Of a stretch of DNA of 64,000 nucleotides, positions 21,144 to 27,100 are shown in pieces; positions within the stretch are counted from its first letter, which is position 1, and each line of letters begins with the position of its first letter. A program made the position numbers and the translations under genes. The stretch comes from Macrostomum lignano (Eukaryota), in contig NIVC01001761.1 in the NCBI GenBank assembly GCA_002269645.1, forward strand, positions 62,001 to 126,000, given 5' to 3'. The notes under the pieces are model-generated. The model was not told the DNA's origin, searched no databases, and saw only the letters and a program-made list of their open reading frames with translations.

Positions 21144-24100
21144 ATGTCGACGGTCTCAGACGCGACTCTCAGCGACGCGGACGATGGAGGTCAGCGGTGG
21201 AGGCTTCAGCAGCCGAGTGCTGGGCTGCAGCGGCTGCTGGGCCTCCTCGAACAGCCCGGGAGAACCGCCGAGCTGCGGGCCGAGCTGCAGGAGGCCACGG
21301 CGGCTGCCGCGTCTGCTGAGGAGCTGGCCAACCTCCTGCTGGTTGCCGACCTTGAAGAGGCGGCCGCTGCCGGTGCGCAAGACTCTGACGCTGATGAGGA
21401 CAAAGCGGAGGCTGCACTGGCCGAGGGTTGGCGCGGTAGCCCTCTGCTAGAGACCTGGACGTTTGAGTCCCAGCTAATCCGCGTGAGATGGCTTCCTGCC
21501 TGTGCTGTCTTTCTGTCTGTCTATCTGTCTGTCTCTGTCTGTCTGTCTGTCTGTCTGTCTGTCTGTCTGTCTGTCTGTCTGTCTGTCTGTCTGTCTGTCT
21601 GTCTGTCTGTCTGTCTGTCTGTCTGTCTGTCTGTCTGCCAGCCCCAACCCCCATCTCTCACCGCAGCTGCCAGGCCAATCTGCAATCGAGGGCTGCACAC
21701 TGCTGCACGCCGCCGTTGCCATTGACAACCACCTGGCTGTGCAGGTCATTGTAGACTGCTGGGGCGACTCCGGCTCCGCACCGCTGAATGCAGTGAGTTC
21801 TGAGCTTCTCAGTAGTCAGTCAACAAAGTCAAAGCCGTAGAAATTCAATAGCAATATTTGATTTCAAATTCAATCAAATTTTTCTTCTTCAACTCAAAAA
21901 AGACAGCCTGAAGCAGAAATTCCGTTTTAAGGCCGAGACTTTGAAATTTTAAGCCTCTGGGAGCAAATCAGCTGGGCCGGCAGTCAGGAAATCCCCTCCC
22001 TGACTTCCCTCTTCATCTCCAACCCTCAGGCTGGTGAGACCCCGCTGCACCTGGCCTGTCGCCTTGGCAATCCGTTCCTCGTCCGCCTGCTCACCCAGTG
22101 GCGGCCAGGCCAGGTGTCGGCCAGGGATCGCCATGGCAACTCGCCTGGACACCTGGCGGCCGCGTCCGGAGCCGCCTGCGTTGCTCAGCTGTGCAGTGTC
22201 GACGGCGTGAACTGGAGCCTCCACAACCTGGTCGGTGCCTGCGGGCTGGGCGGAGGGCATCCGATCGGATTTAGAAAGTACATGGCGCCCTTTGCAGTAG
22301 TTTGGGCGCCCCGTTTGGCGCCGCCTTTGGCGCCCCTGAGGCGGCGCCCCCCCCCTTGACGTCCTTGTTTGTCGCCCCCCTTGGCGCCCATCCCCTTAGC
22401 TCCCTTGTTTGGCGCCGCCTTTGGCGCCCCCTTGCCAGCAGCTTCCTTCTAATTAGTTGTTCATGGCGCGAGCCCATTGGGTGCCAGTTGAGCTTCTGCG
22501 GATTCGCTTGCTCCGCTGTCAACAAAAAATTGCAGTCCAAGAGATTTTCTGTTTGACTTTTTTAATCCCATCTGAAACTTGCAGAACTCTGTGGCGTCTA
22601 GTAACTATGGAAACGGGTTTGTTGTCCATAGATACGACGCTGGACAGGTGCTTTTATAATCTGAGAAGCTGTAGTCGACGAAATTTAATATCAGCGACGT
22701 GACAGTCCATTTTTGTGGAATTCTTTTATTCTAGTATTGAGATAAGGGTCTTTTGTTGATGTATAATCTTGCTTAGTATTAGCTCAGTGATTTGGGGATA
22801 AATTTGGTGATTTGGGGATAAACTCAGTAATTTGGGGATAAATTTGGTGATTTGGGGATAAACTCAGTAATTTGGGGATAAATTTGGTGATTTGGGATAA
22901 ACTCAGTAATTTGGGGATAAATTTGGTGATTTGGGGATAAACTCAGTAATTTGGGGATAAATTTGGTGATTTGGGGATAAACTCAGTAATTTGGGGATAA
23001 ATTTGGTGATTTGGGGATAAACTCAGTAATTTGGGGATAAATTTGGTGATTTGGGGATAAACTCAGTAATTTGGGGATAAATTTGGTGATTTGGGGATAA
23101 ACTCAGTAATTTGGGGATAAATTTGGTGATTTGGGGATAAACTCAGTAATTTGGGGATAAATTTGGTGATTTGGGGATAAACTCAGTAATTTGGGGATAA
23201 ATTTGGTGATTTGGGGATAAACTCAGTAATTTGGGGATAAATTTGGTGATTTGGGATAAACTCAGTAATTTGGGGATAAATTTGGTGATTTGGGGATAAA
23301 CTCAGTAATTTGGGGATAAATTTGGTGATTTGGGGATAAACTCAGTAATTTGGGGATAAATTTGGTGATTTGGGGATAAACTCAGTAATTTGGGGATAAA
23401 TTTGGTGATTTGGGGATAAACTCAGTAATTTGGGAATAAATTTGGTGATTTGGGGATAAACTCAGTAATTTGGGGATAAATTTGGTGATTTGGGATAAAC
23501 TCAGTAATTTGGGGATAAATTTGGTGATTTGGGGATAAACACAGTAATTTGGGGATAAATTTGGTGATTTGGGGATAAACTCAGTAATTTGGGGATAAAT
23601 TTGGTGATTTGGGGATAAACTCAGTAATTTGGGGATAAATTTGGTGATTTGGGGATAAACTCAGTAATTTGGGGATAAATTTGGTGATTTGGGGATAAAC
23701 TCAGTAATTTGGGGATAAATTTGGTGATTTGGGGATAAACTCAGTAATTTGGGGATAAATTTGGTGATTTGGGGATAAACTCAGTAATTTGGGGATAAAT
23801 TTGGTGATTTGGGGATAAACTCAGTAATTTGGGGATAAATTTGGTGATTTGGGGATAAACTCAGTAATTTGGGGATAAATTTGGTGATTTGGGGATAAAC
23901 TCAGTAATTTGGGGATAAATTTGGTGATTTGGGATAAACTCAGTAATTTGGGGATAAATTTGGTGATTTGGGGATAAACACAGTAATTTGGGGATAAATT
24001 TGGTGATTTGGGGATAAACTCAGTAATTTGGGGATAAATTTGGTGATTTGGGGATAAACTCAGTAATTTGGGGATAAATTTGGTGATTTGGGGATAAACT

Positions 24101-27100
24101 CAGTAATTTGGGGATAAATTTGGTGATTTGGGGATAAACTCAGTAAATTTGGATAAATTTGGTGATTTGGGGATAAACTCACCAATTTGGGGATAAATTT
24201 GGTGATTTGGGGATAAACTCAGTAAATTGGGATTAATTTGGTGACTTGGGGATAAACTCAGTAAATTGGGATTAATTTGGTGACTTGGGGATAAACTCAG
24301 TAAATTGGGATTAATTTGGTGACTTGGGGATAAACTTAGTGTTTTTAGGATAATTTTGAAGATTTTTGCATAAATTCTGATTTTGGGATGAATTCGTGGA
24401 ATTTTGGAAAAACACAGCGATCTAGGCATAATTTTTTTGAACAAACTCCGGTCCGCCAGGAGGACAGAACCCCAGCCGAGATGGCCGACCCCACCAGCGG
24501 AGTCCAGAATCTGATCGCCCAGTACCAGCGGGTGAGCGCTCGGCTGTGCACACTTTACCGAATTTGAACTATCAATAAAAATTTGAGCTCAAAAACGTTC
24601 AAATCGCCCTTTATTTTGAAGTCGAGCAGCCAGTTCTACAAGCACCGGCGCATTCAAATCATCGAGTGCTGCAGCTTCGTTGAACAGTGAGTTGCCGGCT
24701 GTTGCAAGTTTGGAAATCTGTTGCAAGATTTTGAATCTGTTGCAAGATTTTAAATCTGTTGCAAGATTTTAAATCTGTTGCAAGATTTTGAATCTGTTGC
24801 AAGATTTTAAATCTGTTGCAAGATTTTGAATCTGTTGCAAGATTTTAAAGCTGTTGCAAGATTTTAAATCTGTTGCAAGATTTTGAATCTGTTGCAAGAT
24901 TTTTAATCTATTGCAAGATTTTGAATCTGTTGCAAGATTTTGAGTCTGTTGCAAGATTTTAAATCTGTTGCAAGATTTTAAATCTGTTGCAAGATTTTGA
25001 ATCTGTTGCAAGATTTTAAATCTGTTGCAAGATTTTGAATCTGTTGCAAGATTTTAAATCTGTTGCAAGATTTTGAATCTGTTGCAAGATTTTGAATCTG
25101 TTGCAAGATTTTGAATCTGTTGCAAGATTTTTAATCTATTGCAAGATTTTGAATCTGTTGCAAGATTTTGAGTCTGTTGCAAGATTTTGAATCTGTTGCA
25201 AGATTGGAAATCTGTTGCAAGATTGGAAATCTGTTGCAAGATTGGAAATCTGTTGCAAGATTCTAAATCTGTTATTAAAATTATGTTGCAAGATTTTGAG
25301 TCTGTTGCAAGTTTGTGTTAACAGATTATAGTTTGCTTTCCAAGGCTATAATTTCATTGTAAGATTTAAATCTGTAGACATATTGGAGCTTGTGTTGTGA
25401 GACTGCAAATTGAGCACTTTAACAAACTGCGTGCTTTCTTTTCCAGCAACGAGACAGGGCTCTGCTGCTGCGGCAAGGACTTCGGCAGCCACATCTACAG
25501 GCCGCTGCCCGCCATCAGCGGGTCGCCAGCCAAGACCGTCGGGTTCGGCGGGGCTCCCTGGAGCCGGGAGACCCACACCATGCCCATCTGCACCAACGCC
25601 TTCGGCATGCTCAAGTTCTCAGCCTTCTTCTCGTCTCGGGTGAGCACAAGCACCAGGCCTCAGGTCATGAAGCCTGAAGCAAACTAAAACTGAGGTCATG
25701 ACCCCAACTAAAACTGAGGTCATGACCCCAACTGAAACTGAGGCCATGACCCAACTGAAACAGAGGTCATGACCCAACTGAAACTGAGGTCATGACCCCA
25801 ACTGAAACTGAGGCCATGACCCCAACTGAAACTGAGGCCATGACCCCAACTGAAACTGAGGTCATGACCCCAACTGAACTGAGGTCATGACAACTGAAAC
25901 TGAGGTCATGACCCCAACTGAAACTGAGGCCATGACCCCAACTGAAACTGAGGCCATGACCCCAACTGAAACTGAGGCCATGACCCCAACTGAAACTGAG
26001 GCCATGACCCCAACTAAAACTGAGGCCATGACCGCAACTGAAACTGAGGTTGAGGGTGTTGAATGACCCTCCTAACTGATGGCTTTGTTTTATACTCCGC
26101 GCTTTATATCCGTGACATTGCCGTGACCCCAAACCGCTCCCTGATGATCAAAACAGTTCGTCAGAGTCTCCGACTCGGTGGACGACGCCTCGCTGCGCTG
26201 GCTGCTGCAGTCGGTGTGGGGCCTCCGCGTGCCGTCCATGCTGGTGACGGTGCTGGGCGGCCGCGTCACCCGCTCCGACTTCAACAACGTCTTCATGAAG
26301 GGCTTCTGGAAAGCGGCTGGAAGTAACAGTGAGTCGAAATATGTCTGCGTGAGCTACTAGTAGTAGCTTGAGGGGAGGTTAGCGTATTTTAGCAAGTGGG
26401 ATTCTGGGATCTGAGTGGGATTCTGGGATCTGAGTGGGATTCTGGGATCTGAGTGGGATTCTGGGATCTGAGTAGGATTCTGGGATCTGAGTGGGATTCT
26501 GGGATCTGAGTGGGATTCTGGGATCTGAGTGGGATTCTGGGATCTGAGTGGGATTCTGGGATCGAGTGGGATTCTGGGATCTGAGTAGGATTCTGGGATC
26601 TGAGTGGGATTCTGGGATCTGAGTGGGATTCTGGGATCTGAGTGGGATTTTGGAATCTGAGTGAGATTCTGGGATCTGAGTGGGATTCTGGGATCTGAGT
26701 GGGATTCTGGGATCTGAGTGGGATTCTGGGATCTGAGTGGGATTCTGGGATCTGAGTGGGATTTTGGAATCTGAGTGAGATTCTGGGATCTGAGTGGGAT
26801 TCTGGGATCTGAGTGGGATTCTGGGATCTGAGTGGGATTCTGGGATCTGAGTGGGATTCTGGGATCTGAGTGGGATTCTGGGATCTGAGTAGGGTTCTGG
26901 GATCTGAGTAGGGTTCTGGGATCTGAGTGGGATTCTGGATCTGAGTAGGATTCTGGGATCGAGTGGGATTCTGGGATCTGAGTAGGATTCTGGGATCTGA
27001 GTGGGATTTTGGGATCTGAAAGTAGGATTCTGGGATCTGAGTGGGATTTCGGGAACTGAAAATAGAATTCTGGGATCTGAGTAGGATTCTGGGATCTGAG

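Follow-up and report, generated by a model that had tools for sequence, protein, structure and literature searches.

Among TRP channels, the TRPA, TRPN, TRPV and TRPC families carry ankyrin repeats N-terminal to a six-transmembrane TRP pore, and to our knowledge none of these families has a SLOG or NUDT9H domain. TRPM channels, in the textbook view, are without canonical N-terminal ankyrin repeats (PMC7306681). The subject of the present analysis is a TRPM gene of the flatworm Macrostomum lignano, located in a 64,000-nucleotide stretch of contig NIVC01001761.1 (assembly GCA_002269645.1, positions 62,001 to 126,000 of the forward strand). This whole stretch is referred to as the window, and all positions are counted from its first letter. 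The textbook trait does not hold for the product of this gene, in which SLOG is preceded by a match to the Pfam family Ank_2 (E 6.7e-15); the absence of ankyrin repeats describes TRPM channels but does not define them. We conclude that, with high probability, the window holds a single 27-exon gene for a TRPM2-like cation channel that has an additional module at its N-terminus, and that this gene is part of a flatworm subfamily of ankyrin-bearing TRPMs.

Two flatworm channels are the closest in published descriptions. TRPM_PZQ (Smp_246790), the target of praziquantel and a member of the flatworm "nudix" subclade of TRPM, has both SLOG and NUDT9H (PMC11731825), as does the window protein; unlike the latter, what is probably the TRPM_PZQ-type clade has ankyrin repeats neither reported nor detected. 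TRPM_MCLZ (Smp_333650), the target of meclonazepam, has N-terminal ankyrin-like repeats, as described by Sprague et al. in 2024 (PMC11731825) and in a follow-up of 2026 (PMC12861061). The same reports describe this "TRPM-like" protein as 1380 amino acids long, encoded by three exons and devoid of SLOG/MHR1-2 and of NUDT9H (PMC11731825, PMC12861061). The premise of the first-pass annotation of this DNA, that TRPM channels lack ankyrin repeats, accordingly agrees with the textbook (PMC7306681) and disagrees with the reports on TRPM_MCLZ. Compared with TRPM_MCLZ by its published description, the window gene has SLOG, NUDT9H and 27 exons, and the presence of the two domains rules it out as the TRPM_MCLZ orthologue. 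The published M. lignano channel Ml.TRPM_PZQ has Glu1495 in its TRP helix (PMC9910428), a residue that fits none of the proteins analyzed here. The window protein has Asp1340, which differs in residue number and identity, and on this ground it is rejected as Ml.TRPM_PZQ; in the tree it falls in the clade sister to the probable TRPM_PZQ type.

Among solved structures, the best match to the window channel is TRPM2 of Nematostella vectensis (nvTRPM2, 6co7; E 6e-95), and the top matches listed are all TRPM, not TRPA, TRPN, TRPV or TRPC. SLOG, MHR3-4, the pore, the TRP helix and NUDT9H all align with nvTRPM2, and the pore region aligns to both TRPM2 and TRPM3 structures. The TRPM homology begins at about amino acid 250 of the model, at the start of exon 5, opposite residue 33 of 6co7, and the MHR1-2 region aligns to nvTRPM2 residues 33-483. 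The difference lies ahead of this point: nvTRPM2 has some 32 residues before the conserved start and no N-terminal ankyrin repeats, whereas the window protein has the ankyrin module.

Gene model and domain order

The gene model spans 21144-44437 on the forward strand, with 27 exons and 1865 amino acids. Its six 5' exons have GT..AG borders and phases 0,0,0,0,2,0, and together hold 332 stop-free codons; the coordinates and phase-compatible junctions that the first-pass annotation had given for them are exactly reproduced. Its length of 1899 amino acids for the whole product is replaced by 1865 in the rebuilt model, a difference that arises because several downstream junctions are uncertain (9/10, 11/12, 13/14, 16/17 and 23/24). 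For the downstream exons, frame-compatible GT/AG pairs were enumerated between coding blocks and chosen for their agreement with P0002 and P0010, two messy M. lignano models, and with the TRPM2 sequence. Three further weak donors were accepted there (GTCTGC, GTTGGT and GTTTGA); the GTTTGA junction gives the best fit to TRPM2. The best protein matches are UniProt entries of M. lignano, which single exons of the model match at up to 98.6% identity. P0001, P0002, P0003 and P0010, UniProt models from an older assembly that represent the window gene and one paralogue, are in places frame-shifted versions of the true exons. This agrees with indel errors described for assembly ML2 (PMC5730564).

The order of domains in the model is ankyrin repeats, a Cys-rich stretch, SLOG/MHR1-2, MHR3-4, a six-transmembrane pore with TRP helix, a coiled coil and a degenerate NUDT9H. 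The features are as follows.

21144..21482 (+): exon 1, 113-amino-acid N-terminal region rich in Ala, Glu and Leu, beginning with the first ATG of the open frame as start codon; donor GTGAGA
21667..21792 (+): exon 2, ankyrin repeat 1 (z 3.5) and the beginning of repeat 2; Pfam Ank_2 at amino acids 126-211
22030..22230 (+): exon 3, ankyrin repeats 2 and 3 (z 10.2 and 7.3); Pfam Ank_3 and Ank at amino acids 157-178; weak donor GTCGGT
22231..24459 (+): intron 3, largely a 40-bp minisatellite (22783-24365, TRF); read-through from exon 3 reaches a stop at 22357-22359
24460..24531 (+): exon 4, linker preceded by a degenerate ankyrin-like repeat in the fourth, capping position, by homologue alignment; Met 24481 is a possible alternative start
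24622-24686 and 25447-25639 (+): exons 5-6, Cys-rich pre-MHR segment and start of the TRPM homology, by alignment to nvTRPM2 6co7
26157..29478 (+): exons 7-10, SLOG/MHR1-2; Pfam LSDAT_euk E 3.9e-23
31671..33468 (+): exons 11-15, MHR3-4 (TRPM2-like domain); Pfam PF25508 E 2.7e-26
33614..39629 (+): exons 16-21, pre-S1, S1-S6 pore domain and TRP helix (W1330, D1340); Pfam Ion_trans E 1.8e-13
40247..40813 (+): exons 22-23, Gly-rich linker and predicted coiled coil, read off the sequence
41509..44437 (+): exons 24-27, NUDT9-homology domain (phmmer), in which the Nudix box is degenerate, and stop codon

Pfam searches of the 332-residue product of the first six exons returned Ank_2 at 55.9 bits (cut-off 27.3) over amino acids 126-211, Ank_3 at E 8.3e-11 and 41.4 bits (cut-off 22.3), and Ank at E 1e-6 and 29.1 bits (cut-off 21.1). 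These scores were identical whether exon 4 was joined on or the intron was read through. Alignment to the ankyrin consensus singles out the same three repeats that are detectable by Pfam, of which the second and third are the strongest. The SLOG domain (LSDAT_euk) follows at amino acids 332-474 of the model.

Relatives of the window gene

The paralogue P0001 served as query in an exhaustive HMMER search, which collected TRPM relatives from across animals. In an ankyrin-consensus screen of the 156 sequences gathered by then, three had repeats N-terminal to SLOG, besides ankyrin-only proteins and two weak internal matches. A profile of the N-terminal module, run on 201 sequences, then recovered the remaining flatworm set and nothing outside flatworms. 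Within M. lignano, PAA85706.1 (BOX15_Mlig003066g1, 1781 amino acids) has Ank_2, LSDAT_euk, the TRPM2-like domain and Ion_trans, and has the sister copies PAA49471.1 and PAA76106.1 (Mlig003066 g1-g3). The same four domains are found in KAG5447154.1 of Clonorchis sinensis (1708 amino acids), with which XP_009171463.1 of Opisthorchis viverrini clusters. In Paragonimus, Ank and LSDAT_euk occur together in the fragment KAF8568535.1 (P. westermani), and with the TRPM2-like domain as well in EG68_06692 (P. skrjabini miyazakii).

The Mlig003066, Clonorchis, Opisthorchis and Paragonimus proteins share the order of the window protein and are colinear with it from the end of exon 1 onward, with NUDT9H in the full-length ones; the C-terminal 45 or so residues encoded by exon 1 align to the N-termini of the Mlig003066, Clonorchis and Opisthorchis proteins. 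The linker between ankyrin repeats and SLOG is about 40 residues longer in the trematode relatives than in the window protein. Identity to these relatives is only 27-35%, and the window gene is for this reason a separate paralogue. It is 29-35% identical to Mlig003066; with P0001, a frameshifted model, it shares about 39% overall, and single exons reach 69%. These values imply that M. lignano has at least three groups of ankyrin-TRPM paralogues.

With the SLOG start of the window protein as the ruler, 29 of 165 TRPM-family proteins have at least 100 residues before SLOG. Sixteen of the long-leader proteins outside the ankyrin-bearing flatworm clade were scanned with Pfam, and none showed ankyrin repeats. 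N-terminal ankyrin repeats were seen in none of the approximately 150 other TRPM-family proteins examined. In a neighbor-joining tree of 941 columns, a rough one built on a quick alignment, the flatworm TRPM2-like proteins group together in 100 of 100 bootstraps and the ankyrin-bearing channels form a clade within them in 83 of 100. Their sister group comprises proteins of Schistosoma spindale (2242 amino acids), Clonorchis (2116 amino acids), Echinostoma, Rodentolepis and M. lignano (Mlig001812); it is probably of the TRPM_PZQ type, judged by protein length and species only.

Because M. lignano paralogues and trematode orthologues share this build, the ankyrin-bearing TRPMs are, on comparison of the proteins, best described as a subfamily older than the split between Macrostomorpha and trematodes and not as a fusion at one locus. 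The first-pass annotation had proposed a lineage-specific domain fusion. Lineage-specific it is, being confined to flatworms among about 165 TRPM-family proteins, but it is not specific to the locus. The architecture had also been presented as undescribed, and its wide occurrence in databases had been named as grounds against the idea. It is in fact already deposited in GenBank and UniProt (PAA85706.1, KAG5447154.1, XP_009171463.1, KAF8568535.1, EG68_06692 and others), which goes part of the way toward that objection. We found no paper describing a channel with ankyrin repeats, SLOG and NUDT9H; subscription journals lay outside the search, so this is provisional. The latest survey of domain gains and losses in TRPM, from 2026, left flatworms unsampled and mentions only divergent ankyrin-like folds inside MHR3-4 (PMC13143021). 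The build is thus present in databases and apparently undescribed, and we consider it fairly probable that an undescribed, conserved flatworm subfamily of TRPMs with ankyrin repeats and SLOG exists.

The distribution also bears on whether the ankyrin exons could be a decaying remnant, or the result of an assembly join, with an in-frame path to the channel arising by chance. Repeats and retroelement debris abound in the region, and the genome is neopolyploid with many duplicate copies (PMC5730564), which would fit such an origin. Against it, all 27 exons are open over 1865 codons with canonical splice sites, the second and third ankyrin repeats show good preservation, and the same order extends from the M. 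lignano paralogues to trematodes. An artifact or a dead gene is in our view highly improbable.

Probable joining of the ankyrin and channel exons

Going by comparison with the homologues, the ankyrin and TRPM exons very likely form one protein. BLASTP of the model against the three Mlig003066 copies gave one high-scoring segment pair, from model amino acids 67-101 to 926, and against the Clonorchis and Opisthorchis proteins again one, from 84 to 1452. In the multiple alignment, the residues on either side of the 22230/24460 junction (SLHNL at the end of exon 3, EDRTPAEMA at the start of exon 4) stand opposite unbroken homologue sequence (LALPDSSGRSALDCA, LSVRDWESKDPLEIS and LQISDQHKKTPYNMA), and the 4/5 junction is likewise spanned by contiguous homologue sequence. 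The exon 4 residues EDRTPAE lie 5' of Met 24481 and align to the coding residues RSALDCA, KDPLEIS and KTPYNMA of the homologues. The junction was also scored with a profile built from homologues only, from which the window protein and P0001 were left out, against alternative peptides of the window. The peptide with exon 4 spliced on scored 71.9 bits, compared to 61.7 for read-through, 63.2 with exon 4 skipped and 62.8 for exons 1-3 only. Exon 4 is therefore worth about 9-10 bits, and the profile alignment extends over the entire exon.

We accept the junction because the homologues are colinear across every junction, and not because of a split repeat or matching phases. The path from exons 1-3 through exon 4 to the TRPM start, as the first-pass annotation had drawn it, is supported by the homologue alignment and the profile score. 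Its order of ankyrin repeats, MHR1-4, pore and NUDT9H in one product is the most likely one. The argument it had used for the junction did not fare as well. Phase compatibility at 22230/24460 is weak evidence, as it is expected by chance: there are eight phase-0 GT sites in exon 3 and its read-through, and five phase-0 AG sites in the open frame 5' of Met 24481. The fourth repeat, which had been invoked to tie the ankyrin exons to exon 4, reaches by itself only z 1.4, a value attained by 48 of 500 shuffles, and gives no Pfam signal. Of the roughly four repeats originally counted, three are confirmed by Pfam and by the consensus, and the fourth is not detectable as a repeat and is aligned only by way of the homologues. 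The split repeat thus falls as an argument, and the junction itself stands by homology.

The faintness of the fourth repeat is one of several points that weigh against a single gene in a conserved subfamily. The donor of exon 3 (GTCGGT) is weak. Translation from Met 24481 would begin some 20 residues ahead of the conserved start and yield an N-terminus that is ordinary for TRPM. The transcript-level support, described below, concerns the paralogue Mlig003066 and not the window locus, and the clade of ankyrin-bearing channels comes from the rough tree described above. An AlphaFold2 prediction for the Paragonimus orthologue, made from an alignment of six rows, had a mean predicted local distance difference test score (pLDDT) of 32.6 and a predicted template modeling score (pTM) of 0.23, and was discarded as unusable for placing the ankyrin module. 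Finally, chimeras do occur among flatworm gene models. KAG5451156.1 of Clonorchis sinensis (P0136), one of the 16 long-leader proteins scanned, has a C-terminal fragment of Vinculin (amino acids 27-216) ahead of TRPM, most likely a merged gene model, and the example shows that extra N-terminal domains annotated in fluke proteins call for a check.

The ordinary N-terminus at Met 24481, the chance fit of phases and the weak fourth repeat, in a species in which about 30% of genes are trans-spliced and operons exist (PMC8629364), meant that a reading as two adjacent genes, possibly in an operon, deserved a serious test. In such an arrangement a small ankyrin protein would end at 22359, and a separate channel mRNA would start in intron 3 or be trans-spliced to the spliced leader at 24460, with translation from Met 24481 or from the ATG of the leader; the M. 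lignano leader ends in ATG, which would be in frame at 24460. The leader sequence itself has no match in the window. Several observations speak against it. Ankyrin repeats and SLOG lie in one open reading frame in five other gene sets, one of them derived from transcripts cut at spliced-leader sites, the residues EDRTPAE upstream of the methionine align to homologue coding sequence, and exon 4 as a whole adds bits to the profile score. Between the read-through stop and the minisatellite (22360-22780, about 420 bases) there is neither AATAAA nor ATTAAA. The read-through peptide is of low complexity and matches nothing. The PAA protein annotation is based on RNA-seq, with transcripts cut wherever spliced-leader and poly(A) sites had been mapped by experiment (PMC5730564), and ankyrin repeats and channel lie in a single open reading frame of this set in Mlig003066; there is therefore transcript-level support, for a paralogue. 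Two separate genes seem improbable to us. The points that favor them would equally fit a minor isoform, that is, a fused mRNA accompanied by a shorter channel-only form from an internal start or from trans-splicing of the leader at exon 4, and the 2.2-kb intron 3 could house an internal promoter. The coexistence of both forms is possible, if on balance unlikely, and a single fused product remains the preferred reading.

Conserved sites and a possible mode of action

Several sites of the channel part can be compared with nvTRPM2. The S2 motif LIEEAKQ of the window protein stands opposite LIEEIRQ, and the S3 motif WNLMDI opposite WNFVDI. The Glu and Gln of S2 and the Asn and Asp of S3 form the Ca2+ site in the structures of TRPM2, TRPM4 and TRPM8; by the alignment, these residues are kept in the window protein. 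The Clonorchis relative has lost the Asn/Asp pair of S3: the trematode ankyrin-TRPMs P0088 and P0160 (Clonorchis, Opisthorchis) read IWKSLELV there, compared to WN..D in the window protein and nvTRPM2. Going by these residues, the Ca2+ site may be lost in the fluke orthologues.

The TRP helix, of the WxxQR type, runs from amino acid 1330, and Asp1340 is its W+10 residue (window about 39460-39492). Mlig003066 and the ankyrin-TRPMs of Clonorchis and Opisthorchis have Glu here. The same position of TRPM_PZQ is described as the gatekeeper for praziquantel, at which Asp is permissive (PMC9910428). A heptad-like stretch follows at about amino acids 1480-1545, in which Pfam TRPM_tetra has no match at E 0.01. 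The NUDT9H domain is matched by phmmer to human NUDT9 (1q33, E 3e-14) and to nvTRPM2 (E 8.6e-12). Its Nudix box (REx2EE), which when intact denotes ADP-ribose hydrolase activity, is not intact, and the box of Mlig003066 is just as degenerate at the same position. The box of nvTRPM2, by comparison, is catalytically competent.

Taken together with what holds for the TRPM2 family, the protein would be a tetrameric channel, probably non-selective for cations. Its N-terminal module, composed of the Ala/Glu-rich leader, three ankyrin repeats that are clear and a capping one that is degenerate, precedes the usual TRPM order, to which it is joined by in-frame splicing. Since the presumed S2/S3 residues of the Ca2+ site are kept, gating would need Ca2+. 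SLOG and a catalytically dead NUDT9H would be the nucleotide-binding modules, the latter binding nucleotide without hydrolysis because its Nudix box is degenerate. The ankyrin module would sit at the N-terminus of MHR1-2, low on the outside of the cytosolic ring. The first-pass annotation had suggested protein docking or mechanical or chemical sensing as possible roles. The module might act as a docking or regulatory surface, to which either a partner protein or NUDT9H or MHR domains of the channel itself would bind; this is the most likely of the roles we considered, and speculative. A spring of the TRPN type is unlikely, as three to four repeats are too short for it.

Repeats and neighboring genes

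Nearly all introns of the channel gene contain a minisatellite, each different from the others. They lie at 22783-24365, 24699-25311, 25682-26049, 26395-27392, 27611-27875, 28138-28778, 29478-31641, 31995-32552, 33748-34175, 35322-35709, 36801-38337, 38912-39416, 39810-40150, 42859-43217 and 43573-44100. The donor of exon 10 is the exact starting point of a (GGTT)x541 array. In the 38-bp array at 35322-35709, the last 23 nucleotides of exon 18 and the GTGAGC donor that follows them recur about ten times, which creates a row of duplicate donors.

Upstream of the gene, retroelement remains occupy 8788-10707 and 11717-14666 (+). One element has a frameshifted reverse transcriptase and an integrase zinc-binding domain, and the other is of the BEL/Pao type with DUF1759 and Peptidase_A17. 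Downstream lies a gene for a T-box transcription factor, of which two exons are seen at 53853-54170 and 54441-54728 (+), with Pfam T-box matches at E 6.9e-32 and 4.7e-14. Both ends of the window (1-1730 and 62769-63884) consist of long simple or tandem repeats that are open in several phases and probably non-coding.

Significance

The gain is incremental, as the domain add-on is visible in public protein sets and the evidence is at the level of sequence, not mechanism. On the reading preferred here, the TRPM family regained an ankyrin module at least once. Flatworm TRPMs include the targets of praziquantel and meclonazepam, and other paralogues are still orphans (PMC11731825); members of the ankyrin-bearing clade occur in Clonorchis, Opisthorchis and Paragonimus, which infect humans. 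It is conceivable, though doubtful, that TRPM_MCLZ derives its ankyrin N-terminus from this subfamily and would then have lost SLOG and NUDT9H. If this link were true, two stories that lead from orphan channel to drug target would be joined, and more fluke channels would become candidate anthelmintic targets. The subfamily also offers a natural test case for the effect of an N-terminal ankyrin stack on a gating ring of the TRPM2 type, and M. lignano, a free-living model capable of transgenesis, is an organism in which such a channel can be studied.

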